Shown piece after piece: positions 20,137 to 59,900 of a DNA stretch of 64,000 nt (position 1 is its first letter; every line of letters starts with the position of its first letter). The notes beneath the pieces were generated by a model, which had not been told where the DNA came from, ran no database searches, and was given only the letters and a program-made list of their open reading frames with translations. The stretch comes from Thecamonas trahens ATCC 50062 (taxonomy: Eukaryota; Protista; Apusomonadida). The stretch is taken from assembly GCF_000142905.1 (NCBI RefSeq), contig NW_013657666.1, positions 258,631 to 322,630 on the forward strand. The letters run 5' to 3'. The position numbers and the translations under genes are program-made.

Positions 20137-20901
20137 ATGGCGCAGGAAGCAAAGAACGGGCAGCCGTGGGGTGGAGCAGCCAGCGAGGGCGAGGACTGCG
20201 GAGTGTGCGACGACAAGATGGAGGACATGCTGCGGTTTGTGCGACAGGGCGGGCGTGGCGCCGGCGCCGGCGGGCAGAGCAGCAGCGGCACCAGTGCCGC
20301 CGACGCNNNNNNNNNNNNNNNNNNNNNNNNNNNNNNNNNNNNNNNNNNNNNNNNNNNNNNNNNNNNNNNNNNNNNNNNNNNNNNNNNNNNNNNNNNNNNN
20401 NNNNNNTTTATTCATACGTGGTTGGTACGAAGAAATGTGTTCCCCCCAGAAAAAAAAAAAGGGCGGGAAACCCCCCAACAGAGAATAAAAAAAATTTGCG
20501 GAGCGGGGGCCGGGCAGACGAGGGGGCCACCGGGGCGGGCGGCGCTGGGGCGGGCGACATGGACGCTACTGCACACTGCGTCGGTGTACTATCCGGAGGA
20601 CCCGTCGGCCGGCGAGCAGGAAGACATGGCCGCCTTTCTCGCCTCGCTGGCCAAGGTCTATCCCTGCAAGGTCTGTGCTGAGGATCTACGCCAGCAGATC
20701 GAGCTCTTCCCGCCGGCGCTTGGCTCGCGCGCCGAGTACGCCCAGTGGATGTGCGACATGCACAACCGCATCAACTACAACCTCGGCAAGCCCGAGTTTG
20801 ACTGCTCGCGTGTCTTTGATCGCTGGCGCAAGGCGTCGGCCAAGGCGTCGGCCAAGGCGTCGGCCAAGGCGTCGGCCGCGTCCTCGTCGCCGACATCGTA
20901 G
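20137..20901 (+). CDS. ERV1: Erv1/ALR FAD-linked sulfhydryl oxidase (interrupted by assembly gap)
   Basis: N-terminal CGVC shuttle, LGRATWTLLHT, YPCKVCAEDL redox CxxC, WMCDMHN...LGKPEFDC. Confidence 0.9.
   Translation: MAQEAKNGQPWGGAASEGEDCGVCDDKMEDMLRFVRQGGRGAGAGGQSSSGTSAADXXXXXXXXXXXXXXXXXXXXXXXXXXXXXXXXXXFIHTWLVRRNVFPPEKKKGRETPQQRIKKICGAGAGQTRGPPGRAALGRATWTLLHTASVYYPEDPSAGEQEDMAAFLASLAKVYPCKVCAEDLRQQIELFPPALGSRAEYAQWMCDMHNRINYNLGKPEFDCSRVFDRWRKASAKASAKASAKASAASSSPTS
20307..20406. other. Assembly gap (others at 23158-23257, 47440-47563, 56810-56909, 58418-58517)
   Basis: Runs of N. Confidence 1.
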
Positions 20902-22709: not shown

Positions 22710-23519
22710 ATGCAGCACGGAGGTCCCCGGGCCCGGGCCGAGCCGGGCTTTGCAGTCTCGTTGGGGCAACTCATTGATGAGTGCACCGAGGAGCTTCGTG
22801 GCGAGTGGCGGCCGGGCATGGTCCCGTCGTCGCTCCCGCGTGATGACCTTACTGCCGCCGTCCGCAGAATCAACAAGTCGGTGACCGTGGGCGCGAGCAA
22901 GGCCTTTGCGCCGGCCGCCCGCTCTGCGCTCGTCACCCACCTGACCGAGGCCTACACCGAAGCCGCCGCCGGCGCGGCTGCTGCTGCTCGATGGCCAACG
23001 TACACCGAGCCTTGCACGCCGGCAAGCCGCTTGTCGCCACCCTTGGATACTCCGTCGATGGAGCTAGCATCTATTACGGCATTGGAGCGTCCGATGGCGT
23101 TGGACGATCGATACCGACGTAAAAGTCCGACGGCAGCGCCTAACTACGCCTTCCCTCNNNNNNNNNNNNNNNNNNNNNNNNNNNNNNNNNNNNNNNNNNN
23201 NNNNNNNNNNNNNNNNNNNNNNNNNNNNNNNNNNNNNNNNNNNNNNNNNNNNNNNNNCGAGTCTGCCGTCTCGGCCCTCCGCGCCTCGGCCGCGCACCAC
23301 TCTGGCCTCGCCGCCCTTGTCGACGCGCTCGACCTCGACGCTCTCCGCGCTGCCCTCGCCCCGCACACGGGCCCCATGGCCGCAGAACTCGATCGCACCC
23401 GCGCCCTTGTCGCAGACCTGTATGCTGCTGTCAAGGCCGACCCACGACTCGCCGCCTCGCGCAAGCGCGCTGCAGACGAGCCGCCGTCGGCTACAAAGCG
23501 CCGCAAGACCCGCGCCTGA
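22710..23519 (+). CDS. Hypothetical protein spanning a gap; basic NLS-like C-terminus
   Basis: ORF on both sides of the N-gap with coding-like codon usage; ends KRRKTRA. Confidence 0.45.
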   Translation: MQHGGPRARAEPGFAVSLGQLIDECTEELRGEWRPGMVPSSLPRDDLTAAVRRINKSVTVGASKAFAPAARSALVTHLTEAYTEAAAGAAAAARWPTYTEPCTPASRLSPPLDTPSMELASITALERPMALDDRYRRKSPTAAPNYAFPXXXXXXXXXXXXXXXXXXXXXXXXXXXXXXXXXXESAVSALRASAAHHSGLAALVDALDLDALRAALAPHTGPMAAELDRTRALVADLYAAVKADPRLAASRKRAADEPPSATKRRKTRA

Positions 23520-23538: not shown

Positions 23539-24666
23539 TCACACTGCGCTCCGCCCCGCAGGCCGCCCAGCCACATGAGACCCGCTCAGTCGCGCCCGCA
23601 CATTGCGCATCGCCTCGCCAAACGTCAGCACAAGGAGCGCCTGCCCGACCTCGGCCTCGGTCCACTGCCGTGACCGCTCGTACACCGTCGCGTTGAGAAC
23701 CAGTCCCTGGCCCTGGTCGTACAACAGAATCGAGATCCACGCCAGGATAAGCCCACACAGCATAACTACAAACACGCCATACACATGCACAGAGCACGTG
23801 TACCGCAACCATGCTACCGCTCCTGTTGGCGCAGCCTCGTCGAGCACAACGCCCGCGCCGGTCCACACCAACACCATGGCAACCGCAGCCTCCACACTCA
23901 CCACAAAGCCCAGAAACGGGATCAAGTTCCGCTCCCCCACGCAGTTGTTCAGCCACACACAGTGGTGGTCAAACCCGGTCACGCACACCTGGCACTTGGA
24001 GCAGTGGTGCGTCCGCGCCGGCCGATTCACCCCGCACACCGGGCACACGCTCCAACCCGGTTCCCTGCCCGCCAGCCCGCCCTGCTTGCCTTGTTCGGGC
24101 CGAATCCAGCCTGGATCCATCTGCCATGCCGCCACGTAGCACCCGATCTGGACCGCCACCATTGCCGCCACTGCCCACCCCATCCACGCCGATGGCAGCG
24201 CAGGCAGCGCCTCACCGTAGAACACGCCCAGCACAACCACCAGAATCACCGCATACGCCAGCGGAAAGCCCCATCCACTCCCTCCTTTCTCACCTCTCTT
24301 GCCATCCGCGCCTTCTATGCCATGCTCGTTGCCGCTCCCACCCCCATGCCCATGCCCATGCCCATCGCAGCACGCCCCGCCGCCGCGCATCGCCCGCAGC
24401 TCCGCGAGCGCTGCCCCGCGCCCCACCAGCGCCGCCTCCAGCCCAGGCGTCCGCCCCGCTGCGTCGCGGCTTGTCAGCGAGCAGCCTGCGTCCATGAGCA
24501 CACTTGCTGCTACCACGTGCCCACCTGCCAGTGCCGCATGCAGCAGCGTCCGTCCAGCCGTGTCGCGCAGCGTCGCCAGCGGCACGTCGCCGGCGGCCAA
24601 CGCCACCAGCGCCTCGCTCCGCCCGCTCGCCGCAGCTGCAAACGCCTCGGCCGCCACACTGCCCAT
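23539..24666 (-). CDS. Ankyrin-repeat DHHC palmitoyltransferase (Akr1/ZDHHC17-like)
   Basis: Ankyrin GRTLLHAAL and GRTP motifs; CPVCGVNRPARTHHCSKCQVCVTGFDHHCVWLNNCVG; four TM segments; NATVYE. Confidence 0.92.
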   Translation of the reverse strand: MGSVAAEAFAAAASGRSEALVALAAGDVPLATLRDTAGRTLLHAALAGGHVVAASVLMDAGCSLTSRDAAGRTPGLEAALVGRGAALAELRAMRGGGACCDGHGHGHGGGSGNEHGIEGADGKRGEKGGSGWGFPLAYAVILVVVLGVFYGEALPALPSAWMGWAVAAMVAVQIGCYVAAWQMDPGWIRPEQGKQGGLAGREPGWSVCPVCGVNRPARTHHCSKCQVCVTGFDHHCVWLNNCVGERNLIPFLGFVVSVEAAVAMVLVWTGAGVVLDEAAPTGAVAWLRYTCSVHVYGVFVVMLCGLILAWISILLYDQGQGLVLNATVYERSRQWTEAEVGQALLVLTFGEAMRNVRARLSGSHVAGRPAGRSAV

Positions 24667-24754: not shown

Positions 24755-27700
24755 TCAAGCGTTGCGCAGCTTGAGCACAAGTCCCTCCACGCACAGGCCC
24801 GGGCCAAACGAGAGCGAGACAGCGAGCTGCCCATCGCCGCTCGCCCCGCTTGCCCGGCGCTCCTCGTCGAGTACGCAGATGACTGTGCCCGACGAAACGT
24901 TGCCCTGCCGCGCGAGGACCGCCCGCGACGATGCCGTGTGCTCCGCAGTGAGCCCGAGCGTCCGCTCGATGCCCTTGATGATGGCGATGCCGCCCGGGTG
25001 GAGCGGCCACCGCATCGACGCCAGCGGATACGGTCCGGCCCGGCCCGGCAGCGCCTTGGCCAGCAGCGAGTCGACAAAGTTGCCCACCGAGCCCTCAATC
25101 TGCGACGGGATGTCCGCCGAGAGCTCGACCACCATTCCGTCCGCAGACGCATTCCATGTCATCATGTCGCGCGTGCCCGGGATTGTGAACGCCTCGGTGG
25201 CGAGGATCTCGTACACCACCCGCTCTGACGCACGCACTCCTGCCGACGCCCCCACCACCGCCGCAGACGCGCCGTCGCCAAAAATTGCCGCCGCCACAAT
25301 GTTGTCCACCCGCGGATCGAGCTGCATGTGCAACGTGCACAGCTCGCAGCACACGCAGAGGATGCGGTACGACGGGTCCAGTGCCGCAATCGCCCGCGCT
25401 GTCTTGAGCGCAGAGTGCCCACCAAAGCATCCCATCATCAGCACGGACAACCTCTGCGTCGTCGGCTCGAGCCCGAGTTCCTGAATCACCTCGTACGCCA
25501 GCCCTGGATTGAGCATCCCGGTGCATGAGACTCCGATGACGTGGGTGATTTCTGAGAGCTCGCCGCCCCAGTCGGCCACCGCCGCCCGCGCCGCCCGCGC
25601 CGCAAGCTGAGGCGCGTGCGCCTTGTACAACGCCACGCGCTCCTCCACCTTGGCCGACGCCTCCTTCTCCAGGTTGTTGAAAAACGCTCGCCAGTCTGGA
25701 ATGACCGTGAACCGCCCCTCCACCGTAGAGTTGGCCACAATCCGCTTCAGCCGCGCCGCGTCCACGTCTGCCATCTCGAACAGCTCCACCACGTTCTCCA
25801 CAAACTCGTCGGCCGAAAAGTACGTCGTTGGCACCGCCCAGCCGAGGCCCATGATCGCCGACTCGCCGCAAATCTCAGCTTCAGCCTCGGCCTCAGCCTC
25901 GGCCTCGGCCTCAGCCTCAGCCTCGGCCTCAGCCTCAGCCTCGGCCTCAGCCTCAGCCTCAGCGTCAGCCTCAGCCTCGGCCTCAGCCTCAATTTCATCG
26001 CGACCGCTGTCCACAATCGGGTGTGCTGCTGAGGGCGATGTAGCCTGCGCGACCGTTGCCGCTGGCTCGGACTCCAGCTCATGCTCGTGCTCTGGCTCAT
26101 GCTCGGGCTTGTTGACCTCTATCCCCTTTTCTCCTGCCCGTCCGCCAGCGGCCGGCCGCGATCCAATGCTTGTCGCCCGCTCCCGCAGCTCCGCGAGCGT
26201 GACACCAGCAAGCTCCGCCAGGGGCGCGTCAACGCCAAACTGCTCAGACAGTACGCTCTGGAGCTCGGTCACCATTATCGAGTCGATGCCCAGCTCCTGC
26301 AGCGCCACATGCTCGTCGACTTGCGAGGCAGAGCTAAAGCCCAGAATCCGCGCAACCGCATCGCCGAGATCCTCGTCGCCGCGGCCGCTAGCAGCCTCCG
26401 ACACCACTACGTTAGGCACAAAGCATGCCGCAATCGTCGGCGCTGCACTCCGCCCCAGCACTTGCGCCACGCCCTCAAACACAGACTCGGCAGACTGCAA
26501 ACCCACGAGGAACCGCCCGGTGTCGGCCACCCCTCGAGCATGCCCACGCCGGCCACACCGCCGACCTGCATCGCAAGACCGGGCCATCCGGCTGCAACAC
26601 GCGCCGCCACAACCTCTTCCATCGCCGCATTGGCAAGCCCATACGCGCTCTGCCCGGCGTTGCCCAGCCCGGCCACCACAGATGAAAACGCAACGAAAAA
26701 GGCTGCGGTGCCTCCCACAGCCTCGCTCAGCACACGCGCTCCCTCAACCTTGGCCGCCCATGCTCCCTCGACCTGAGCTGCCCCAGTGTTGGCCAGCGCG
26801 CCATCAGCAAGCACGCCCGCAAGGTGGAACACGCCGTCGATCCCACTTGCCTCGCCCGCAATCAGCGCCTCAACCGCCTCCGCATCGGTCACGTCCACCG
26901 CCACTGCCGCCACGCTCGCTCCCAGTTCCTCAAGGCCCTGCACCGCCCGCACCTGCCACCGGCTCTGAACCCCACGTCGCGACAGCAAGACAAGCCGCCT
27001 CACCCCGCATCGCAACACCAGCCACCGCGCGAGCTCGAGGCCCACTCCGCCAAGCCCACCGGAGATCAGCACCGTGTTGGCGGTCGAGAGCACGCGCGGG
27101 AGCCCGGCAGTGACAGGCACGCCTCCGTTCGCCGCCTCGCTCACCTCCAGTAGCACCTTGCCCACATGCTTCCCACGCGCCATGTACCGAAAGGCAGCCT
27201 CGACCTCGCCGGCAGCAAACGTCGTTGCCGGCAGCGGGACCACCTCGCCGCTCGCCAGACCCTCGACCACCAGCGCGTGTACAGGCGCCCAAAGCGCCTC
27301 GTCGCTCATCACCTGGTCGAGGTCAATGCCATGGAACGCCGTGTTCCGCACAAATGCCCCGAGCCCGACTTGCGTGTCCATCATCAAGTCATACTTGCCG
27401 ATCTCCAAGAACGCGCCGTGCGGCGCTACAAGCCGCAGCGACGCAGCAAGCTTGTCGCCGGCAAGCGAGTTGAGAACCAGGTCAACTCCTCGCCCGTTCG
27501 TCGCCTCCAGCACCGCCCGCTCAAAAGCCGTCGACCGCGAGTGGAGAACGTGCTCCACAGCGAGCGCCGGGTAGCGCTCCAGCAGAAACGCCACCTTGGC
27601 GTTGTTACCCACAGAGGTAAAGACCTGCGCGCCACGCGCAAGGGCAATCCGGATAGCAGCCTGGCCCACTCCACCCGAGCCCGAGTGAATGAGCACGCTC

Positions 27701-30700
27701 TGGCCGGCTTTCAACCCCCGCGCACAACAAGCGCATAGTATGCCGTAGCATACACCACAGGCACCGTCGCCGCCTCTTCCAGACTCATCCCAGCAGGAAC
27801 CTCCCACACAAACCGCTCGTCGGTATCCACACGGCTCGCCAGCGCACGCCGCCCGAGTCCCATAACACGCCGCATGCCGCCGCCCGCAACCGTTCCGGAA
27901 AACTCAAATCCAAGCTCGCCGCCAGACAGCCCGTACCCGGCAACTTCTTTGCTCAGCTTACCCGACGCGAGCATCACATCCTTAAAGTTGAGCGCACCGT
28001 ACGCAACATCAACAGCAAGCCCCGAGGCAGGGCTGCTCTCGCTCTCTGGCGACTCAAACCACCCCAGCGATGAGAGTTGCCCGCGCGTCGCCACGTCAAC
28101 AACAGCCCGCACTCGCCCGTCGACAGCAGCCACCGGCACACAAGGCTCGGCGCTCTCGTCGAGCGGAATGTGCCGCCGCACGCATACACGGGCCTTGCTG
28201 TCGACTTCAACAACGCCGCGAGAGACACACGGCCCGCGATCAACGACCGCAAGTGCCTCCGCTGCGCTCATTTCGCTCGGCTTGACCACAAACAGCACCC
28301 GCGCCGCCCACCGCAACAGCCCAGCCTCCTTCAGCACGCAGCGTCCAAGCCCAACCCCACCGGCCTCGGCGTTGACAACAACTCGGACCACGCTCTCGCT
28401 CTCGGTACCCTCGGCCGCGCTCAGTAGCGACTCGCGCCACGACTCAAACTGGCCCAACTCCGCCAGCTCGGTACTCACGTCGACCGTAGCCGCAGGCTCG
28501 CCCACCCTCCGCGCCCATGCCCGCCACACCGTGCCATCGCTGCTAGCCAGTGCGCACAACAGACGCCAGTGCGCTAGCTCGTTCTCGCCAACACTGGCGG
28601 TTGTCAGAGCATACCCTGCGGCGCTATCGCACCCACTGAGCGCGTTCGCGTCCGAAACCCAGCAGACCGTCGTCTCGCCCGGCTCGGCCTCGGTCAACTT
28701 CGCCACCGGGCGGGCAACCACAAGGCCGTAGGTCAGCGCTGCACTCGCCACCTCGTCTCTGCTCACCTCAGGACACTCTTCATCCATCGCCACTGCCAGT
28801 ACCAGCGGGCGGCCACGCTCGCTCCCGGCATCCTGTGCCACCACGCTCAGCGCCAGCCCAAGACCGGCGGCGCTCGTGGTGCGTGAGCCTAGAGCTCCGT
28901 TGAGCGCCACTCGCACGACGCCGTCGACACGCGGTTGCTGGCCGCTCTTTCGCGGAGCGGAAGCCCAGCAAAAGCCGGCCATAGACATGCCGGGCGCGGT
29001 CGCACCACGCAAGACCTCGTCACGGGCCATCCGCCAGCCACCAGCAAGCATCGCCTCCGCCAAAGCGCTCGGGGCCACCCGCAGCTCTCGGACACGTGTT
29101 GGCACCCGCAGCTGCCGATCGCTCGACGCCAGCGCCACGAGCTGCAGCGCCGCATCCAAGCACACGGTGACGCCGCCAAAGACCGAGCCGCGCCACGGTT
29201 TGGTCATTCCGACAGTGCCGCCGCCCTCAGCCCGCGCCAGCGACACAAAGTCGCCGCTGTACTCGTAGCCCTTGAGCCGCAACTCGCGGTAGATGTCGCT
29301 CGCCTCGAGCCACTGGGACTCTTCAGCCTCGCCATTCGACACCTTTTCGCTTGCCTCATCTTCATCACTCTCGACCAGCGTCAGCACGCCCCTTGCCACA
29401 ACACCGGCCTCGGTCGCGATCTCAAACGCGCCCGACGCTTCCAGCACCGACACTCGGATCTTGACCTCGCCGCTGCTCGGCACAACTACCGGCCGGGCAA
29501 TGACAAAGTCCGAAAGCACAAAGCCCGGCACCTCGCATTGCGGACCGAGCGGAGCAGCCAGCGCCGGAACCAGTCCGTCGAGCCTCGCAGGCACAACGCT
29601 ACAGCCGCTGGCAGACCCGCGCCCGGCCCGCGCCAGCACCGCGGACCACGCCAGCGCAATGTAGCCCGAGGCTGGGAAAAGGACCCGCCCGTCGATGACA
29701 TGGCCAGCCACAAAGCCAAACGGCGAGTCGTCCGCGAGGCTGACAGTAAACTCGGGTGCGGCGCCCGGAAGCCGCTCGTTGCGGTGCCGGATGACGTGCC
29801 ACGGCTGCGCATCCCATGCCACAAGCGTCCTCAGCCGCGGCACACGCGCGTGTAGTGGCAGTCGGCGTGCAGCGTCGACCATCGCGCTGGCATCGCCACC
29901 CATCGCGCGAGGCAGTCGCTCCAGCAATGGCTGAGCATCCAACCCCGCTGCATACAGCTGTCCAACGCCAGTCAGCACCGCGCTGTCGCCACGGACGCCC
30001 TTGCGCGTGAGGCCGACAACTCGGCTCTCCCCCGCAGATGTCATGGCCTTGAGCAGCTTGACAAAGATCGACGACGGCCCGATCTCAATGACGCAGCAGC
30101 GGTCAGGAACCTGGGCTACCGCCGGCGCAAACGCCACTGGCGCCACAAAGTTGCGCACAAAGTACTCGGCGTCGGCAAACTCGCCAGCCTCTCCGCCAGA
30201 AGTAGAGATGAACGACGGCGCGAGTGCAGCCGGTGCCGAAAGCACGCTCACCAGCTTCTGCCGCAAGCTCTCGGCTGCACTCGCCACAAGTGGCGTGTGA
30301 AAGGCAACGCCCGACGAATTGACCTCGCGCACAAACACATCGTCGCTCCGCAGCAGCTCCAGGCACTGCGCCATTCCAGCGCAGGTGCCCGACAGCGTCA
30401 CCGACGTCGGTCCGTTGTGGCAGGCCAACCAGACTTGGCCGCTGAGCTCGTCGTGAGCGGCCAGAAACGCATTTGCGGCGTCCCAGGAGAGGCCGACCGC
30501 GGCCATGGCACCCGGCGCAGACAACGACGCCTCGGCCGCTGCCACGCCACGCCAGAACGCAACTTGCATCGCTTGCCTGACGTCCAAGCCCCCAGCAGCG
30601 GCAGCAGCGGCAATCTCGCCGGCCGAGTGGCCAAGCACCGCCGCCGGCGCGACCAGCCCGAGCTCCGCCAGCAGCGCAGTGAGCGCAAGCTGGCTAGCAG

Positions 30701-32719
30701 TCAGCGTGAGGTAGCCTATCACAGGATTGGCCAGTGCCTCCTCGTCCAGCGTGTCAAACAGCGCAACAAGGTCGGCCGCACCAGCCGGCACATGCACAGG
30801 CGCACTCGTCACTAGCGGCGCCACCGCTGACGAGGCCTCGGCCAGCACCGCCGCCACTGCCGGAAACGCTTGCGCAGTCCCGGCCATCATGCCTGCCCAC
30901 TGGGTGCCCATGCCGTTGAACACAAAAGCGTAGCGGGTGAGCGGCGAAGCAGGCGCCGGTGGTCGCAGCTTGACTGCGCCACCGGCGTCGCTCTCTTGCT
31001 GCGGCCATATGAGGCCAGTCCGGAACGGATACCGAGTCACTGGCGCGCTGCCAAACAGGCTGGCCAGCCGGTCGCTCAGTGCGGCCGGACGAGCGAGCTC
31101 GCCGGTGTAGCTCTGTAGGAGCTGGACGACCTCGGCTCTGAGCGCGGCAAGCCCATCCTGCGTCCGCGACGCCAGCGGATACATCATGTGGGGGGAGGCA
31201 CCGTCGATTGGTCGGCGCTGTCGTCAGCGGCTCGTGCGGGCTGCGGGGCGCGCACCAGAGCGTGTGCATTGGTGCCACCAAAGCCAAATGAGGAGATGGC
31301 AACCAGGCCGCCGCGCCATGGCGTCGGCTGGGTAACCACTCGCATGGTCCCTGAAAGTAGCGCTGGGATCTTGGGATTCGGCTGGGTGTAGTGAAGGTTA
31401 GGTGGAAGCACGCCGGCGCGGGCAGCGAGGCAGACCTTGATGATGCCGGCGAGACCAGAAACGTTCTCGCAGTGGCCCATGTTCGACTTGACCGATCCAA
31501 CGAGCAGCGGGTTCTCCGGCGAGCGGCTGAGCACGTGCTTGACAAACACTTCGTCGAGCGCGTTGGCCTCGACCGAGTCGCCGGCCTGGGTTCCGGTCCC
31601 GTGGGCCTCGACATAGACGACGTCTTCGGGCGTCGCGCCGGCGGCGGCGAGGCAAGATCGAATGAGTGCAACCTGCGCATCGCTGGATGGATAGGTGATG
31701 CCCTGCGGAGTATAGCCGTCGTTGTTGCATGCTGCAACAAGGAGGTCGAGGTAAGCGTTGCGGGCAGTGTCGGCAGCGTCAAGGACAATGGCAGCAATGC
31801 CCTCGGCGCGGACGTAGCCGTTGGCCGACGCATCAAACGTCTTGCAAGCTCCGTCGGGCGAGAGCATGTTGAGCTTGTCAAAGGCGACCGACCGGGTCGG
31901 GATGAGCTGGATGTTGACACCGCCCACAATTGCCCGCTCGCACTCGCCGGACCGCAGCGCGGCGAGCGCCATCGCCAGCGCCACCATGCCGGACGAGCAT
32001 GCCGTGTCCACCGTGAGCGACGGGCCGTGAAGGTCGTAAAAGTATGAAATGCGGTTGGAGAACATGTTGAGCAGACACCCGGTGTGCTCGTAGCCCGTGA
32101 TGGCGGTGGCATCCTCGAGCAGGTCAAAGTGCGAGTCCGAGAACGAACCTGCCACCCAGACTCCGGTTGAGCTTCCGGCCAGCTCGTCCAGCGTCCACCC
32201 AGCATCAGTCACAGCCTCATGGGTGGCGTGCAGCAGCAGCCGCAGCTGTGGGTCCATCTTGTCCGCCGCCTTGCCTGTCACCGCAAAGAACCTGGCGTCA
32301 AACTCGGCGATCGACGGCAGCTTGCCTGACCGCGCAGGCAGTGACCGCGCGTCCATTGTGTCCATGTCCTGTCCACCCGCCCGCCCACGTCATCACCACC
32401 ACCACCACCGCGACACAGAACTTGCATGAGTCTCTAACCTCTGCTCACCTCTGCTCTTCTCAGCGACTCTGTCCACGCCTTCACGCCCGACTCCATTGGG
32501 TCAGCGGGGGATGCCCCAGCCACTTCTTGGTGGCGTCAGCGAGCGACCTCGACCTTCCTCAGGGCCGGCAACAAGCCACCCGTCACCGCCGTCACGTACC
32601 CACCGGCGGTCGTCAGCGGTGACCATGTCAGTGCCAGCGACAAGGTTGGCAAAGAACGTCTCTGCATCTTCGGACTCTGGGAATCGGCATGAGAGGCCCG
32701 AGATCACGACCTTGGCCAT
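24755..32719 (-). CDS. Hybrid type I FAS/PKS - type III PKS ('Steely'-like) megasynthase, ~2,580 aa; intron 32369-32599; three probable homopolymer frameshifts
   Basis: KS DTACSS, EAHGTGT, SNMGH; AT GHSAG and AFH; [12 protein letters not shown] and LDAALQ; [12 protein letters not shown]; [11 protein letters not shown] and GQSAYGLAN; ACP LGIDSIM; (AE)n linker; type III triad MGCFGG, HPGG, GNVSS plus SFGPGL. The ORFs join by single-base changes in runs at 31190-31195, 27715-27719 and 26530-26533. Confidence 0.92.
25875..25990 (-). repeat. Hexanucleotide tandem repeat encoding the (Ala-Glu)n ACP-to-type III PKS linker
   Basis: (tcagcc/tcggcc)n on the + strand; translates as EAEAEA... Confidence 0.95.
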
Positions 32720-32933: not shown

Positions 32934-35900
32934 CTACCGCGGAGCGTGCCATGTGGCGAGGACCGAGGCGAGGACCGCGTGTCGTTCGCTGGGCGCTACA
33001 TTTGAGGCGTCGATGAGCGAGCGGAGGTCGGCGACGAGAGCGTCGCGCGTGATCGAGGGTGTGGTGGTGAGCGATGCAGGTGGTGGCGTGATCGAGGAAG
33101 AAGAAAGGAACAAATCACAGGCAGCGTCGGCCTCTTCCTGCTCCTCGTCGTCGATGTAGCCCTCCGAGTACTCGTACGAGTACGTATACTCCCGGTTAGC
33201 AATGCCGGAAAGAACAGCAGGGCGTGTGATCGGTGTGTGGGGTGCGGAAATCGTGCGCGGCGTCGGGTCGGCGCGCTCCTTGTGTACGGTGCCGACGCCG
33301 GGGTTGACGCTGATGAGTTTGGCGTCGGGCGAGCCGGTGAGGCGGCCGCGGCGGTTGTGGAGCTCGCGGGCAATGACAAAGATGTACAGGCCCACGACAA
33401 CGGCGTTAGTGCCGATGACCAAGACCTCGAGGACGCCAGACGATGACGCGAGGTCGCGCTCGTGGATACGCGATGAGAAGACTTGCCCGGCCACAAAGGT
33501 GAAGAGGAGCTGGACAAGGGTGATGAGCTCCAGCTTGTTGAGCGTGGGAAAGATAAACGGCTCGGTGTAGATCTGGACGAGCATGGCGGCGACAATGGTG
33601 ATAAAGAAGCCCATGGGGACGGCGAGCGAGGTTGCAGGCACAATGGCGATGATGGCAATGGCCAGCCGCCGGGCCATGATGGCAAACTCGAACCAGTGGC
33701 AAGAGTCGTGATACGCGGCGTAGAACCACTGGAACCAGTGGCCGTCGACCTCGGCGATCTTGAGCGCTTTGAGCCTTTTGAGCTGAGATTTTCGGTTGCG
33801 CATGAGGACGAGGAAGACGAGCGGGACGCCGAGGCCGTACAAGACCGAAAACAGAGCGCCGATGACGACGAGACGAATCCAAGTCGCCGACGACGACGTG
33901 CACTCGATCCAAGGGGCAGCCCAGAGGTACGACTTGCCGTCGGCCGACTCACGGCACGGAAGGACCATGAGCATGCCGACCGTGATCGGCATGTACACCA
34001 GGTTGAGGACAGCAAGGCCCGAACGAATGCCACCGTACCGCCAGTGCTTTTCCGGCTTGCCAAACAGGCCGTTGAGCGAGACCTTGGTCAGGATGGCCAA
34101 AAGGCAGTAGGCAACCAAGCAGAAGATGACCAGGACCGGGACGGCGAGCGTCGACGCCACAAACGCCGTTTCCCACGAATTGTTTGAGCTTCCGAGGCAG
34201 GTCAGGATGTTGGCCGAGGCCGAAGTCCAGCCAAAGACACCCGAGAAGAATGTGGTGACCGAGGCCGGCCACACAAAGGCCGACGAGCGAGCAAAGAGCA
34301 GCGACGAGGTCTGCATAAAGATGAACATCGACTTGACGAGCGGCGCGAGGACGACTGACCGTACACCGGTCTGATTGAGGGCGTACCACACGCAGAACGC
34401 GATCGAGTACGCAATGGCCAGGATCGTCGGTAGGATGCGCGGGCAGCGGCGACAGCGGCGGCCCTGCGGGTAGTGGCCGCGAGCACATCGCGAACATAGC
34501 CGGTCCTCGTAGCCCTCGCTACAGGTGAACGGATAGCCAGCGCTCGGGTTGCATGCCGTCTCATCGACGCCGATCGGGTAGCATGGGTCAATGAGAGGCG
34601 CGCCCGAGGCGGCAGTAGAGGCCACAAAATACCCGGGATTGATGGTAAGATTGGCAGGGTAGACAAGCGCAGTGCCAGCGCCATCGACGTCGAGCAGGAC
34701 CCGGCCGCCGTGGCAGGTCACTGCAGGCGCAAGATGGGCACACGGGAGGCACACGCCGCTCGAGCCGTGGTAGTTGGGTAGACACTCGCAGAGCGAGGCC
34801 GAGTAGTAGCCCTCGTCGAGATAAAGAGTGAGCCTTCGAGTCACAGGATCGGTGAGCGACGGGCACTTGTATGGAATGGCCGGGTTCGGCTGAATGAGCG
34901 GATAAACGGCAATGGTGTTGTCCGGGAGCGAGAGACGGTCGGGCTCGCCAAGGCCGGCGTTGCCACGCAAGTCGAGGATGGAGACGCCGTCGTCGGTGAT
35001 GCGTGAGGCCGAGCCGGTGAGATTGTTGTTGGAGAGATCGACCTCGGAGATGTGCGGGAGGAGCGAGAAGACCGTGGGGATGAGCCCAGTAATGTCGTTG
35101 TCGTTGAGGAAGAGGCGAACCATGCCCTGAAGAAAGTGGTCATTGACGACATAGAAGAGCGAGTCTTGCAGGATGCCAGACAAGGCGTTGTGGGAAAAGT
35201 CGACGGTGGCCAACGTGGTGCCGTGCTTGAGCACGTCCAGATACGCCGAGACCGGGCCGGCCAGCGCGTTGTGAGAAAAGTCGACCGATTCAAGCGTGTC
35301 GTTGAGCTTTGCCCATGAGCTGGGAAGCAGGCCGCCGGAGAACTGGTTGTGCGAGGCCTTGAGTGTGACGAGGCCGTGGACGCGCTCGGCCGACGGGATG
35401 TCGCCAGTAAAGGCGTTGAACGCCATATTGAGCTCCTTAACATAGACATCGCAGGTGGTAGGAAAGGCAGAGATTGCATTCGACGAGACATCGACGGTCT
35501 GCAGCTGCGGCTTGTCGCACAACACATCGAGGCCGCCGGCCAAGCGGTTCTCCTCCAGCTTGAGCTTTGCGAGCAAAGGGAAGCCTGGGGGAATGGTGCC
35601 TTCGAGGTGATTCTTGCCAAGCTCGAGCTGGTACATGGCCGCCATGTCAGTGCCCCACGACGGAGGAATGGTTCCGGTCAGGTTATTGGCGAAGAGCTTG
35701 AGGACAGAGAGACCGGGCAGCTTGCCGAGCTCGGGCGGGAGGGTTCCAGAGAGGCCCGGGTTATTGTAGATCAGCAACTGGTACATGGAGGTCATGTCAC
35801 CAAGTTCAGGCGGAAGCGTGCCAGTGATGTCGGTAAAAGTGATGACAAAGAGCCAGAGCGCCTTGAGCTGCCCCAGCTCGGGCGGAATGGTGCCGGAGAG

Positions 35901-36911
35901 GCCGGTCTCGTAGATGACAAAGGTCTCGAGGGCAGCCATGCCTCCCCACTCGGGGTGCATGGTCCCGCGGAGATCGGGGTTGATGGAGAGGTCGAGGCCC
36001 GCGATCTTGTCCATCGCTCCAAGCTCGGGGTAGAACGAGCCGGTGAGGCCGGTGTTGGACAGAGAGAGCGAGCGGATGGCGGACCATTGCGGAAGCCAGC
36101 GCGGCAGCGGCATGTTGAGCGGGTTGTTGCGGATGTCAAAAATGGAGATGGTCGAGTCCTTGTACTCTTCGGGAAGGCCAGTAAAGGCGCAGTCGCGGAC
36201 GATGACCTCCTCGATGCCGACGATGCGGGCGAGGACGCTCGAGAGCGGCGAGCCGCCGAGGCCTGATTGCGAGGCAAAGACAACCTTGAGCGATGTCATG
36301 CCGCTCCACGACGGCGGAAAGTTACCTTCCAGGCCAGCACCCGACGCAGGGCCACCGGTGGTGAGGACAAGCCGGCGGAGCGAGGAGAGCGAGCCCCACT
36401 CGGGCGGGAGCGGCCCGGTCAGCAGGTTCGATGAGTACACCTTGGTGTGGAAAAAGTACTTTGCAATGAGCGACATCGACGCCCAGATGGCCTCGTCCGG
36501 TAGCGCCTCGCCGCCGACGTTGATTTCGACCAGCTTGGGCATGGCGCTCGCCCACACGCCTGGCAGCGTGCCCTCCATCCGGTTGGCCGAGAGGTCGAGG
36601 ACGAGCAGCTCGGGAAGAGCCCACGCTGCGGCCTCGCTCGGCAGGCTTCCGGTCAGCCCGTTGTTCGAGAGGCGCAGCTCGACAACGTGGACAGCGCCGT
36701 CGTCGGTCGTTGCGTTCCCGCACCGCACGCCGGCATACATGCACACGTCCGGCCCGTTCCACCCGCTTGCCTCAAGCCAGGAACTCCCGTGAGTGGTGAC
36801 GAACAGTGCGTCGAGCGCCGCCTTTTCAGCCATCAGCGGATTCGCACTCGCCGCACATCCAGAGAGTGCCACCAGCAGAGCGAGCACCGTCACAACAAAG
36901 ACTGGAAGCAT
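32934..36911 (-). CDS. Receptor-like protein: signal peptide, plant-type LRR ectodomain, Cys-rich stalk, ~7 TM segments, no kinase
   Basis: LRRNT cap (W...C.YAGVRC), many LxxLxLxxNxLxGxIPxELG repeats, Cys-rich region (CSEGYEDRLCSRCARGHY), multi-pass hydrophobic C-terminus. Confidence 0.85.
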   Translation of the reverse strand: MLPVFVVTVLALLVALSGCAASANPLMAEKAALDALFVTTHGSSWLEASGWNGPDVCMYAGVRCGNATTDDGAVHVVELRLSNNGLTGSLPSEAAAWALPELLVLDLSANRMEGTLPGVWASAMPKLVEINVGGEALPDEAIWASMSLIAKYFFHTKVYSSNLLTGPLPPEWGSLSSLRRLVLTTGGPASGAGLEGNFPPSWSGMTSLKVVFASQSGLGGSPLSSVLARIVGIEEVIVRDCAFTGLPEEYKDSTISIFDIRNNPLNMPLPRWLPQWSAIRSLSLSNTGLTGSFYPELGAMDKIAGLDLSINPDLRGTMHPEWGGMAALETFVIYETGLSGTIPPELGQLKALWLFVITFTDITGTLPPELGDMTSMYQLLIYNNPGLSGTLPPELGKLPGLSVLKLFANNLTGTIPPSWGTDMAAMYQLELGKNHLEGTIPPGFPLLAKLKLEENRLAGGLDVLCDKPQLQTVDVSSNAISAFPTTCDVYVKELNMAFNAFTGDIPSAERVHGLVTLKASHNQFSGGLLPSSWAKLNDTLESVDFSHNALAGPVSAYLDVLKHGTTLATVDFSHNALSGILQDSLFYVVNDHFLQGMVRLFLNDNDITGLIPTVFSLLPHISEVDLSNNNLTGSASRITDDGVSILDLRGNAGLGEPDRLSLPDNTIAVYPLIQPNPAIPYKCPSLTDPVTRRLTLYLDEGYYSASLCECLPNYHGSSGVCLPCAHLAPAVTCHGGRVLLDVDGAGTALVYPANLTINPGYFVASTAASGAPLIDPCYPIGVDETACNPSAGYPFTCSEGYEDRLCSRCARGHYPQGRRCRRCPRILPTILAIAYSIAFCVWYALNQTGVRSVVLAPLVKSMFIFMQTSSLLFARSSAFVWPASVTTFFSGVFGWTSASANILTCLGSSNNSWETAFVASTLAVPVLVIFCLVAYCLLAILTKVSLNGLFGKPEKHWRYGGIRSGLAVLNLVYMPITVGMLMVLPCRESADGKSYLWAAPWIECTSSSATWIRLVVIGALFSVLYGLGVPLVFLVLMRNRKSQLKRLKALKIAEVDGHWFQWFYAAYHDSCHWFEFAIMARRLAIAIIAIVPATSLAVPMGFFITIVAAMLVQIYTEPFIFPTLNKLELITLVQLLFTFVAGQVFSSRIHERDLASSSGVLEVLVIGTNAVVVGLYIFVIARELHNRRGRLTGSPDAKLISVNPGVGTVHKERADPTPRTISAPHTPITRPAVLSGIANREYTYSYEYSEGYIDDEEQEEADAACDLFLSSSSITPPPASLTTTPSITRDALVADLRSLIDASNVAPSERHAVLASVLATWHAPR

Positions 36912-47355: not shown

Positions 47356-47701
47356 GTTGTCCTTGTTGCTGCTACGGATGTAGTGAGTCAAGCGTACTTG
47401 CCCTCGCCCTTGACTCTGCCTCGGGGTGGGGGGTGGGTGNNNNNNNNNNNNNNNNNNNNNNNNNNNNNNNNNNNNNNNNNNNNNNNNNNNNNNNNNNNNN
47501 NNNNNNNNNNNNNNNNNNNNNNNNNNNNNNNNNNNNNNNNNNNNNNNNNNNNNNNNNNNNNNNCGCCGATGCCGCTTCCCCCTCCCTCCCCCTCCCCCCC
47601 CCCCTCCTCCCAACTCACCTCCCGCTCCTCAGCGACGTCGCCTGCGCCACGTCCTCGCCTTCCACTTGCGCAATGTGTGTCTGGAGGCACCCGGCCCGCC
47701 C

Positions 47702-56791: not shown

Positions 56792-56980
56792 GTACGCCCC
56801 TTCCCCTTANNNNNNNNNNNNNNNNNNNNNNNNNNNNNNNNNNNNNNNNNNNNNNNNNNNNNNNNNNNNNNNNNNNNNNNNNNNNNNNNNNNNNNNNNNN
56901 NNNNNNNNNCCCCCCCCCCCCCCCCCACTACCCCCCCCCTTTCAATACCCCACCACACTGCCACCACCTCACCACACACC

Positions 56981-59900
56981 ATGTCATCACCTCCACCCCC
57001 CTCGCCATGGTGCCACCTCCCGGCGTGGTGCTCCACGGCGTGGCAGGCCCATTGGCGAGCCATCACCATGACTCTGGCCGTCGCCATTGTCCTCCTCTCC
57101 GGCACGGTCACCTTTGTCTACGTGGAGGAGCTGACGGCTGTCGATGCTGCCTACCTCACCACTGTCACCGTAACCACCATCGGCTTTGGCGACATCGTCC
57201 CCACCACAGATAACGGCAAGGGCGCAGTCGGGGTCTTTGTCCTCATAGGTGTCGGCCTCGTCGGCTACGCCCTCTCAACCATCTCGCAGATCTCAGGCAA
57301 CCGTGTCAAGGATCTGGTGGCAAAGCTCCACTCGAAGGGTCTCTCAGACCCTTACGTCGTCCTCGGCCCGGCCGATCGTGCATCGTCATCGTTCTGCGCC
57401 TCGCGCTGCCGCTGCTTTGTCTACTTTCCCTGCTGCGCCCCCGGTGGCGCCTGGTTCTACACCCCCGTGGCAAACGGACTCTCAACCCGAGCTGGCCTCA
57501 CCCGCCTGTCTGGTCGCTCCCGGGCGAATACTCGGCGTCGGGCACTCTGTTCTTTGAAGTCTACGACTGGGACGCAAACACCGTCGACGACCTCATCGGC
57601 TCGGTCCTAGTCCCCATCCCGCCGCACATTCTCCACGCCTCTCCGCCAGACGCCGAACGCCCGCACGACGCCCAGAGCCCATACTCGGACGCCTACACCG
57701 GCATCGGCCCCTCGTCGGCCTTCTCGTCTGCACAGGACGTTCCCATCGAGCCGCTCTCCCAGACCCCACCCGATGCCTGGTACCCGATCAACGTCCCGCT
57801 CACGCTCTCTGACGACGCCGCAGACATGTACCTTCGCGCTCCACCGCCGTCGGCGTCGACGACTTCGTCGTCGGTCTCTTCCGCATCGTCGGCGCTCGAC
57901 TCGGACACGACCGCGCTTGTGCCCAACCCGCGTCTCAAAATCGCCATTCGCCGCCACGGCGACGCCATCGAGGTCAAGGTTCTCTCCGCCTCGGGCCTCC
58001 CGGTCATGGACATGTCCATGATCGGCAACGCGCTCCGCCGTGCGCTCAACAAGGACCTGCTCGAGGTCATCCTCGCCTTTGCCGTTCTTGGCGTTCTTGT
58101 CGTCGGCGGCACCCTCGCCTTTGCCCACATCGAGGACTGGCGCCTGCTCGACGCTTTCTACTGGGCCGTCATCACCCTCTTCACCATCGGCTACGGTGAC
58201 ATTACACCTTCCACAAAGACCGGCCGCATCGTCTTTATCCCCTACGCGTTTCTTCTCCTCGGCTTTGGCGCCTACGCCCTCTCGCTGCTCATGGACAAGT
58301 CGCTCGGCCTCCTCACCAAGTATGCGCTCGTTGCTGCCGCATCAAGCCATGCCCGATGCTGCAACAACTCGGCAGTCCCGCGACACCCACTGCTGGGCCT
58401 CGCTCCGCCAGAAGCTCNNNNNNNNNNNNNNNNNNNNNNNNNNNNNNNNNNNNNNNNNNNNNNNNNNNNNNNNNNNNNNNNNNNNNNNNNNNNNNNNNNN
58501 NNNNNNNNNNNNNNNNNGAACTAATTCTCTCTCCCAGACCCCACCCGATGCCTGGTACCCGATCAACGTCCCGCTCACGCTCTCTGACGACGCCGCAGAC
58601 ATGTACCTTCGCGCTCCACCGCCGTCGGCGTCGACGACTTCGTCGTCGGTCTCTTCCGCATCGTCGGCGCTCGACTCGGACACGACCGCGCTTGTGCCCA
58701 ACCCGCGTCTCAAAATCGCCATTCGCCGCCACGGCGACGCCATCGAGGTCAAGGTTCTCTCCGCCTCGGGCCTCCCGGTCATGGACATGTCCATGATCGG
58801 CAACGCGCTCCGCCGTGCGCTCAACAAGGACCTGCTCGAGGTCATCCTCGCCTTTGCCGTTCTTGGCGTTCTTGTCGTCGGCGGCACCCTCGCCTTTGCC
58901 CACATCGAGGACTGGCGCCTGCTCGACGCTTTCTACTGGGCCGTCATCACCCTCTTCACCATCGGCTACGGTGACATTGCACCTGCCACAAAGACCGGCC
59001 GCATCGTCTTTATCCCCTACGCGTTTCTTCTCCTCGGCTTTGGCGCCTACGCCCTCTCGCTGCTCATGGACAAGTCGCTCGGCCTCCTCACCAAGTATGC
59101 GCTCGTTGCTGCCGCATCCAAGCCAATGCCCGATGCTGCCAACAACTCGGCAAGTCCCGCCGACACCCACTGCTGGGCCTCGCTCCGCCACAAGCTCCGT
59201 GCTTGTGTCACCACCCGCCAGGGCAAGTTCCAGGTCCAGCTTGTCATCGCCCTCGCCCTTACAGTTGCACTCATCCTTGTGGGCGGCCTCATCTCGCTCC
59301 AGGAGGGCTGGACCTATCTCGCCGGCGTCGCCTTTGCCCTCGAGACCGCATCGACACTTGGTCTCGGCACCCGCGTCCCGAAGACCGACGTCGGAAAGAT
59401 TCTCACCATGGCCTTTGCCCTCTTTGCCGTCGGCGTCCTCTTCTCCGTCATCTCGGTCGTCGCTCAGCTCTCGGTGGAGCGCTCGCTTGTCTTCAAGCGT
59501 GAGCTCCTCCGCCGTAAGGCCGAGGCCCATGAGCTCGAGGCCCAGCTTGTCGCCCAAGCCTCAGGCCACGTTCTCGCCATTGATGCCCCGCACAGCCAGC
59601 CATCCATTGCAGCGCTCGCACCCGGCCTCTCCGCCGAGAGCCTGGCCCGCCCATCCAAGTCGCGTTACGCGGCCACCCGTGACTGGGTCAAGACCTCCTT
59701 TGCCGCCCAGGTCTTCCTCGGCCTCGTCGGCTTCTTTGCCATCAACTGCGCCGCTGCCGGTGGCCTTCGCTACACCGAGCGCGGCATCATCACCCGCTAC
59801 CGCGACGCCATGTACGCTTCGCTCATCGTCTCGTCATCCACGGGCTACGGCGACATTGTGCCCAAGACCGAAGAGGGCTTTGTCATCATCTACGCCCTCC

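Follow-up and report, generated by a model that had tools for sequence, protein, structure and literature searches.

On the minus strand of a 64,000-nt stretch from Thecamonas trahens ATCC 50062 (the window, whose coordinates are used throughout) lies a single gene of about 2,578 codons, reaching from 24755 to 32719 with the ATG at 32719 and the TGA at 24755-24757. As read from the six frames in combination with Pfam, the encoded domains follow each other in the order ketosynthase (KS), acyltransferase (AT), dehydratase (DH), a short spacer with a psiKR-like motif, enoyl reductase (ER), ketoreductase (KR), acyl carrier protein (ACP), an (EA)19 linker and a type III polyketide synthase (PKS). 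We regard it as likely that the gene is real and nuclear and codes for a hybrid synthase of the Steely type, a design known from Dictyostelium. The original prediction was directed at the span 26180-32719, which corresponds to the type I half of this hybrid from KS to ACP.

All parts of the gene are encoded on the minus strand. It starts with a short exon of 40 codons (32600..32719), which contributes the N-terminus of the KS and ends with ...DDRRW, followed by an intron of 231 nt (32369..32599) with GT..AG borders (GTACGT...CAG). The length of the intron is a multiple of three, and stops are found inside it. The exon junction is supported by the intron-less relatives L009, L010 and L011 (see below), in which the counterpart of exon 1 and the rest of the KS are contiguous. 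After the intron one long exon follows, within which the reading frame steps back by one base at three sites: at a C6 run (31190..31195), at a G5 run within the ER between YYALVVRG and a 12-residue segment (27715..27719), and at a G4 run between GVGMLEG and another 12-residue segment (26530..26533). On both flanks of each site the conserved residues run on without loss, and other than at these three sites the gene is free of stops. Most likely, the three frame changes are homopolymer errors of the assembly. None of the five assembly gaps in the window (N runs at 20307-20406, 23158-23257, 47440-47563, 56810-56909 and 58418-58517) falls inside the gene, and its GC content of 0.66 compares with 0.65 for the window.

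Pfam analysis recognised the KS, the KS-AT linker, the AT, DH, ER, KR and ACP as well as both halves of the type III PKS far beyond chance. The portion of the KS behind exon 1 occupies 31388..32368, where motif reading located the active Cys in DTACSS (31991-32008) and the two His residues in EAHGTGT (31589-31609) and KSNMGH (31472-31489). It is succeeded by the KS-AT linker (31214..31381, family KAsynt_C_assoc), the AT (29940..30926, GHSAGE at 30615-30632), the DH (29031..29756, with a 14-residue motif at 29661-29702), the ER, which spans the second frame change (27139..28106, with a 14-residue motif at 27652-27693), the KR (26554..27075, GGLGGVGLE at 27034-27060 and GNAGQSAYG at 26638-26664) and the ACP (26186..26368), whose phosphopantetheine serine lies in LGIDSI at 26276-26293. 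A 38-residue (EA)n linker (25877..25990) joins the ACP to the type III PKS domain (24770..25870). The latter was assigned by Pfam (Chal_sti_synt_N with 129 bits and Chal_sti_synt_C with 86 bits, cut-offs of 27) and by its Cys-His-Asn triad, carried by SCTGM (25514-25528), LHPGG (24989-25003) and GNVSSGT (24884-24904); the triad columns are invariant across the type III PKS alignment. ACP and type III PKS share one stop-free frame of 662 codons, and the gene ends right after the type III domain.

Catalytic motifs were found intact in all domains, namely Cys/His/His of the KS, GHSxG of the AT, HxxxGxxxxP of the DH, the glycine motifs of ER and KR, the DS of the ACP and the type III triad. Scans of the gene with Pfam and NCBIfam gave no thioesterase family, and the type III domain is preceded by a FASN-like ACP, in agreement with the original prediction that a type III PKS had taken the place of the thioesterase. 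The minus strand, the intron and the three frame changes did not figure in that prediction. The eight motifs quoted in it are likewise all encoded at the place it had given, on the minus strand: a 14-residue motif at 32669-32710, a 16-residue motif at 32600-32647, LPARSGKL at 32318-32341, MDPQLRLLL at 32231-32257, the 14-residue motif of the DH at 29661-29702, a 16-residue motif at 27717-27764, the 14-residue motif of the ER at 27652-27693 and the psiKR-like 12-residue motif at 28326-28361.

The interval between DH and ER (28107..29030) had been described as short and devoid of a GxGxG for binding S-adenosylmethionine. It comprises 309 residues, and the sole GxGxG within it is the GVGLG of the psiKR-like motif, so that this description holds. 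In a HMMER alignment 165 query residues remained unaligned versus about 315 in human FASN, and the end part of the interval had its counterpart in chain residues 1456-1550 of human FASN, the psiKR region. For the first 165 residues no relative was detectable, and no Pfam family was matched by the interval even at E<=10. This shortened part stands where FASN has its pseudo-methyltransferase, and the vestigial methyltransferase of the original prediction is a putative one. A single-sequence AlphaFold2 model of the interval reached a pLDDT of 32.6 and was unusable for a fold comparison. In L010, a marine contig, the DH-ER spacer measures about 430 residues and exceeds that of the hybrid.

For the analysis of kinship each stop-free piece of the gene was searched separately. 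Against the PDB the KS obtained 384-393 bits with animal FASN (human, pig), 323 bits with the AFPK EcPKS1 and 238 bits with Dictyostelium PKS16; bacterial modular synthases reached 285 bits at most and LovB 265 bits. The same ranking was observed for AT-DH (animal FASN 324, EcPKS1 273, PKS16 80 bits) and for ER-KR (animal FASN 311-318, EcPKS1 219, mycocerosic acid synthase (MAS) 185, PKS16 66 bits), and the ACPs of rat and human FASN were on top of the matches of the ACP. Every domain of the type I half, the ACP included, thus has its best PDB score with animal FASN, as had been predicted from the motifs; for AT-DH, ER-KR and ACP this kinship is given by phmmer scores against the PDB and not by trees, for the KS by both. 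In an index of 5.8 billion proteins, searched among those of 220-700 residues, the closest relatives of the KS were fragments of animal FASN with 47-51% identity, originating from a beetle, an annelid, a mollusc, a moth, a nematode and ticks, and bacterial PKSs began about 80 bits below them.

Phylogenetic analysis of the KS by maximum likelihood (IQ-TREE, LG+C20+F+G4, 45 rows, 373 columns) united the hybrid, the marine contig P0308, the pair P0304 and P0315, an AFPK-like group and animal FAS (fatty acid synthase) in a clade with 100/100 support, within which the hybrid forms the first branch (95/84). The grouping of the KS with FASN, which had been proposed as a check, was therefore obtained. 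A scan of 185,579 bacterial and archaeal species, with one genome per species, yielded KSs of 40-47% identity, and the best 16 of them all fell outside the FAS/AFPK clade, on the bacterial side. Judged from sequence, the type I half, ACP included, is the deepest branch of the animal FAS/AFPK-like clade and is not close to Dictyostelium PKS. Its basal position can be read either as vertical descent from the apusomonad-opisthokont ancestor with several losses or as gene transfer.

Some other members of the KS tree deserve mention on their own account. P0304 (L009:5134-6350) is found in GCA_037382205.1, a metagenome-assembled genome (MAG) of Candidatus Thiodiazotropha, at the end of a bacterial-looking contig of 6 kb, where it adjoins a phage-type integrase; its presence there could be due to transfer or to a mis-binned contig. 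The second-deepest branch of the clade is L010 (JGI 3300021334, 6.2 kb), which encodes a FASN-like KS-AT-DH-ER-KR in three broken frames. L011:10001-16443 (ENA ERZ26694059) has an AFPK-like look, with a KS followed by AT-psiKR-KR-ACP and with neither DH nor ER; it lies on an animal-like contig (Death, OTU and hAT neighbours) and belongs to a tight group of ten members that is sister to animal FAS. Furthermore, P0280, annotated as 'polyketide synthase, partial [Salmonella enterica]', was placed deep among mollusc- and annelid-like animal FASN and is probably animal DNA within a Salmonella assembly.

The type III half gave a different picture of kinship from the type I half with respect to the Steely enzymes. 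Its best PDB match is Steely1, aligned end to end with 197 bits, followed by a plant enzyme with 179 bits. Sequence databases hold relatives closer than Steely1 (227-253 bits, 36-40% identity), among them gammaproteobacterial enzymes, and a further relative with 56-58% identity is encoded on a JGI contig of 1 kb. In the maximum-likelihood tree of type III PKSs the hybrid pairs with this contig at 100/99, and the pair is sister to P0157, P0154 and P0155, again at 100/99. The resulting group is nested in a further 100/99 clade with PKSs of a gammaproteobacterial MAG, a Coxiellaceae MAG and other bacterial-type contigs; P0156, P0159 and P0151 are clade members from bacterial contexts. Steely1 is the top PDB match also of P0154 (200 bits versus 155 for the next) and of P0151 (223 versus 190), and the Steely type III domain probably belongs in or near the type III clade of the hybrid. 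Since Steely1 is the best PDB match of the hybrid domain and of the two clade members tested, the type III halves of hybrid and Steely are perhaps homologous and may share a source.

At the loci of P0154, P0155 and P0157 an AMP-binding enzyme, a PP-binding domain and the type III PKS follow in this order on one strand, and the contigs of P0154 and P0155 additionally carry eukaryotic genes (TAFII55, RCC1, hAT transposase). Such loci with an AMP-binding (FAAL-like) enzyme, an ACP and a type III PKS from uncultured eukaryotes were located at L006:7113-11482, L007:7130-11551, L100:262-3295 and on L101. A single frame holds the carrier together with the type III PKS in L006 and L007, and in L100 a GTATGT donor is situated at the gap between the reading frames; each row is probably one intron-split gene. 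To our knowledge, a fusion of AMP-ligase, ACP and type III PKS has not been described, and the loci suggest an undescribed eukaryotic group of carrier-dependent type III PKSs. Given the 100/99 grouping with these genes, the nearest relatives of the type III half are carrier-fed eukaryotic type III PKSs. Their ACPs resemble the ACP of the hybrid less than FASN-type ACPs do. With respect to this FASN-like carrier, unlike those of the AMP-ligase genes, we concluded that the point of fusion lies between the ACP and the type III domain, i.e. at the thioesterase position. In a metagenome scan with the type III alignment, none of the 80 loci listed, all with at most 40% identity, has type I domains nearby.

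Within the 28.7-Mb assembly the hybrid gene is single-copy, representing the sole type III PKS and the sole FASN-like KS, and no second copy or allele was found there. A look-up by way of a neighbouring ORF gave no public gene model. Also present in this genome are genes for a fungal-type FAS alpha (Fas_alpha_ACP, FAS_I_H, KR, KS; C21:315351-322004), a stop-free KS-AT-KR-DH PKS of 2,771 codons (C5:327790-336102) and a mitochondrial-type KAS on C29 (L097:3762-5471). Because of the fungal-type FAS it is unlikely that the hybrid serves as the housekeeping FAS. The hybrid gene is flanked on the same minus strand by two genes, neither of which is an obvious candidate for a tailoring enzyme: an ankyrin-repeat DHHC palmitoyltransferase (23539-24666), whose ATG lies 88 nt downstream of the stop of the hybrid, and upstream of the hybrid a leucine-rich-repeat membrane protein of 1,325 residues (32934-36911).

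From the domain content and the likeness to Steely enzymes, rather than from measurement, we infer a function as follows. The type I module KS-AT-DH-ER-KR-ACP, a member of the animal FAS/AFPK family, would work iteratively and with full reduction and would assemble a saturated acyl chain on the ACP of the module itself. In a synthase without thioesterase this chain would cross the (EA)19 linker and reach the type III PKS at the C-terminus. There, a few malonyl-CoA units would be added and the product cyclised to an alkyl-resorcinol, an acyl-phloroglucinol or an alkyl-pyrone. The housekeeping fatty acids would likely be supplied by the separate fungal-type FAS.

As for the origin, a carrier-fed type III PKS would have been placed at the thioesterase position of a FASN-like synthase. 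As far as the type I partner is concerned, this fusion was probably separate from the Steely fusions of Dictyostelium, because the type I partners of hybrid and Steely appear to be unrelated and the fusion events would consequently differ. The independent origin of the Steely design, as originally predicted, thus probably holds for the type I partner, while for the type III halves it is qualified by a possible common subfamily, Steely1 being the best PDB match. A more far-reaching scenario can be put forward tentatively: the FAS/AFPK megasynthase may be older than animals and may have served the apusomonad-opisthokont ancestor as a secondary-metabolite synthase beside a fungal-type FAS. It may then have disappeared from fungi, choanoflagellates, sponges and ctenophores and later been recruited as the animal housekeeping FAS. 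The Thecamonas hybrid would in this case represent an early branch that has survived, as well as a second, separately assembled Steely design. We consider this scenario possible, with the odds rather against it.

Several observations weigh against the interpretation of the gene as an intact, separately assembled hybrid synthase of the FAS/AFPK lineage. The product, the chain length and the transfer from ACP to type III domain are predictions from the domain content and from Steely. The type III halves of hybrid and Steely may be homologous at the subfamily level, and the independence from the Steely type I half is drawn from one Dictyostelium PKS (PKS16) and from published trees (PMC3188802; PMC10764717). 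Moreover, the location of P0304 on a bacterial-looking MAG contig makes gene transfer possible, and three frame changes in 7.7 kb could be the mark of a young pseudogene. If the gene were such a decaying pseudogene, the frame changes would be real and the full-length hybrid protein would no longer be made. All three one-base changes, however, occur in runs of C6, G5 or G4 and move the frame the same way, the conservation of residues is unbroken across each of them, no further stop is present and the catalytic motifs are all intact, which makes decay an unlikely explanation. A common origin with Steely would mean that the StlA/StlB fusion, or a transfer between amoeba and flagellate, was the source of the whole hybrid or at least of the design with an ACP-type III cassette, the FASN look being due to divergence or to later replacement. 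The identical domain order would fit this idea, as would the end-to-end match of the type III domain to Steely1 and the top rank of Steely1 for the clade members P0154 and P0151, where it leads by 33-45 bits. Yet the scores of every type I domain and of the ACP are two- to five-fold higher with animal FASN than with PKS16, and the KS lies inside the 100/100 FAS/AFPK clade. Steely1, with 197 bits, is also a more distant relative of the type III domain than the AMP-ligase-ACP-type III genes and the gammaproteobacterial enzymes (227-253 bits) are. Since, in addition, the two Steely type I halves within Dictyostelium are themselves merely distant relatives of each other (PMC3188802), we judge a common origin to be highly improbable.

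An import from bacteria could have delivered the type I half, or a pair of type I FAS and type III PKS similar to the Azotobacter ars system that was fused after the transfer, and in both cases the likeness to FASN would be silent on animal ancestry. P0304, a member of the FAS/AFPK clade beside a phage-type integrase on a MAG contig, would be in line with such an import, and so would the nesting of the type III clade among PKSs from bacterial contexts (P0156, P0159, P0151). On the other hand, the best 16 bacterial and archaeal KSs are all outside the FAS/AFPK clade, none of the 80 listed metagenome loci with a related type III PKS shows type I domains in its surroundings, the closest relatives on the type III side are eukaryotic genes that carry introns, and the hybrid gene itself has an intron and a host-like GC content. 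The chance of a bacterial import is accordingly small. Although the top database matches are fragments of animal FASN, a recent transfer from an animal or a contamination with animal DNA is hardly credible: the identity to animal FASN is just 47-53%, in the KS tree the hybrid splits off before all animal sequences (95/84), the contig extends over more than 320 kb at uniform GC, and the gene includes a fused domain of non-animal kind. We therefore favour a real hybrid gene whose type I half belongs to the base of the FAS/AFPK lineage.

The gene has a bearing on two published statements. Steely hybrids have been described as unique to slime moulds (PMC9489281, PMC12625978) and were also called unique in PMC3188802; in our literature search Steely enzymes were reported from dictyostelids only. 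In a survey from 2024 the enzyme family of the synthase half, animal FAS/AFPK, was found in animals only, animal-type FAS is stated to be absent from all other lineages and to have originated within animals, and amoeba PKSs were placed with PKSs and not with AFPKs (PMC10764717). Our literature search gave no paper joining Thecamonas with a polyketide synthase or a fatty acid synthase, and the papers on type III PKSs that it listed were without Thecamonas. With the present gene the Steely design appears outside the slime moulds and with a different type I partner. The same design with another type I partner suggests that putting a carrier-fed type III PKS in place of a thioesterase is a repeatable route to alkyl-phenolic lipids. 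A basal, intron-bearing FAS/AFPK member in a non-animal protist furthermore renders the origin of animal FASN testable, as an ancient secondary-metabolite synthase versus a transferred gene.

In comparison with known systems, a functional analogue is provided by Azotobacter, where the type I synthase ArsA/D passes an ACP-bound fatty acyl chain directly to the type III PKSs ArsB/C. Unlike the fused hybrid, the Ars system consists of separate proteins of one operon, and none of the bacterial loci examined combines a KS of the FASN clade with a type III PKS of the clade of the hybrid. The hybrid agrees with animal FASN and AFPKs in domain order, in the motifs of ER and KR and in having a psiKR-like segment and a FASN-like ACP, and its KS is about 50% identical to theirs. 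It differs from animal FASN in carrying a type III PKS instead of the thioesterase, in a spacer at the pseudo-methyltransferase region that is about 150 residues shorter and free of detectable similarity, and in its non-animal host, which also possesses a fungal-type FAS. In analogy to the AMP-ligase-ACP-type III genes, which supply its nearest type III relatives (100/99), the hybrid has its type III PKS directly behind a carrier protein; in those genes, however, the carrier is loaded by an adenylating enzyme and not by a synthase. The closest correspondence in architecture is found with the Dictyostelium Steely enzymes StlA and StlB, which likewise unite the order KS-AT-DH-ER-KR-ACP-type III PKS in a single chain whose type III domain takes the place of a thioesterase; among solved structures, the hybrid matches the type III domain of Steely1 best (197 bits). 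Unlike Steely, the hybrid is hosted by a flagellate and not by a slime mould, it has nearer type III relatives in the AMP-ligase-ACP-type III genes than in Steely1, and its type I half belongs to the animal FAS/AFPK clade, as judged with PKS16 as a proxy (238, 80 and 66 bits versus 390, 324 and 318 bits for FASN).

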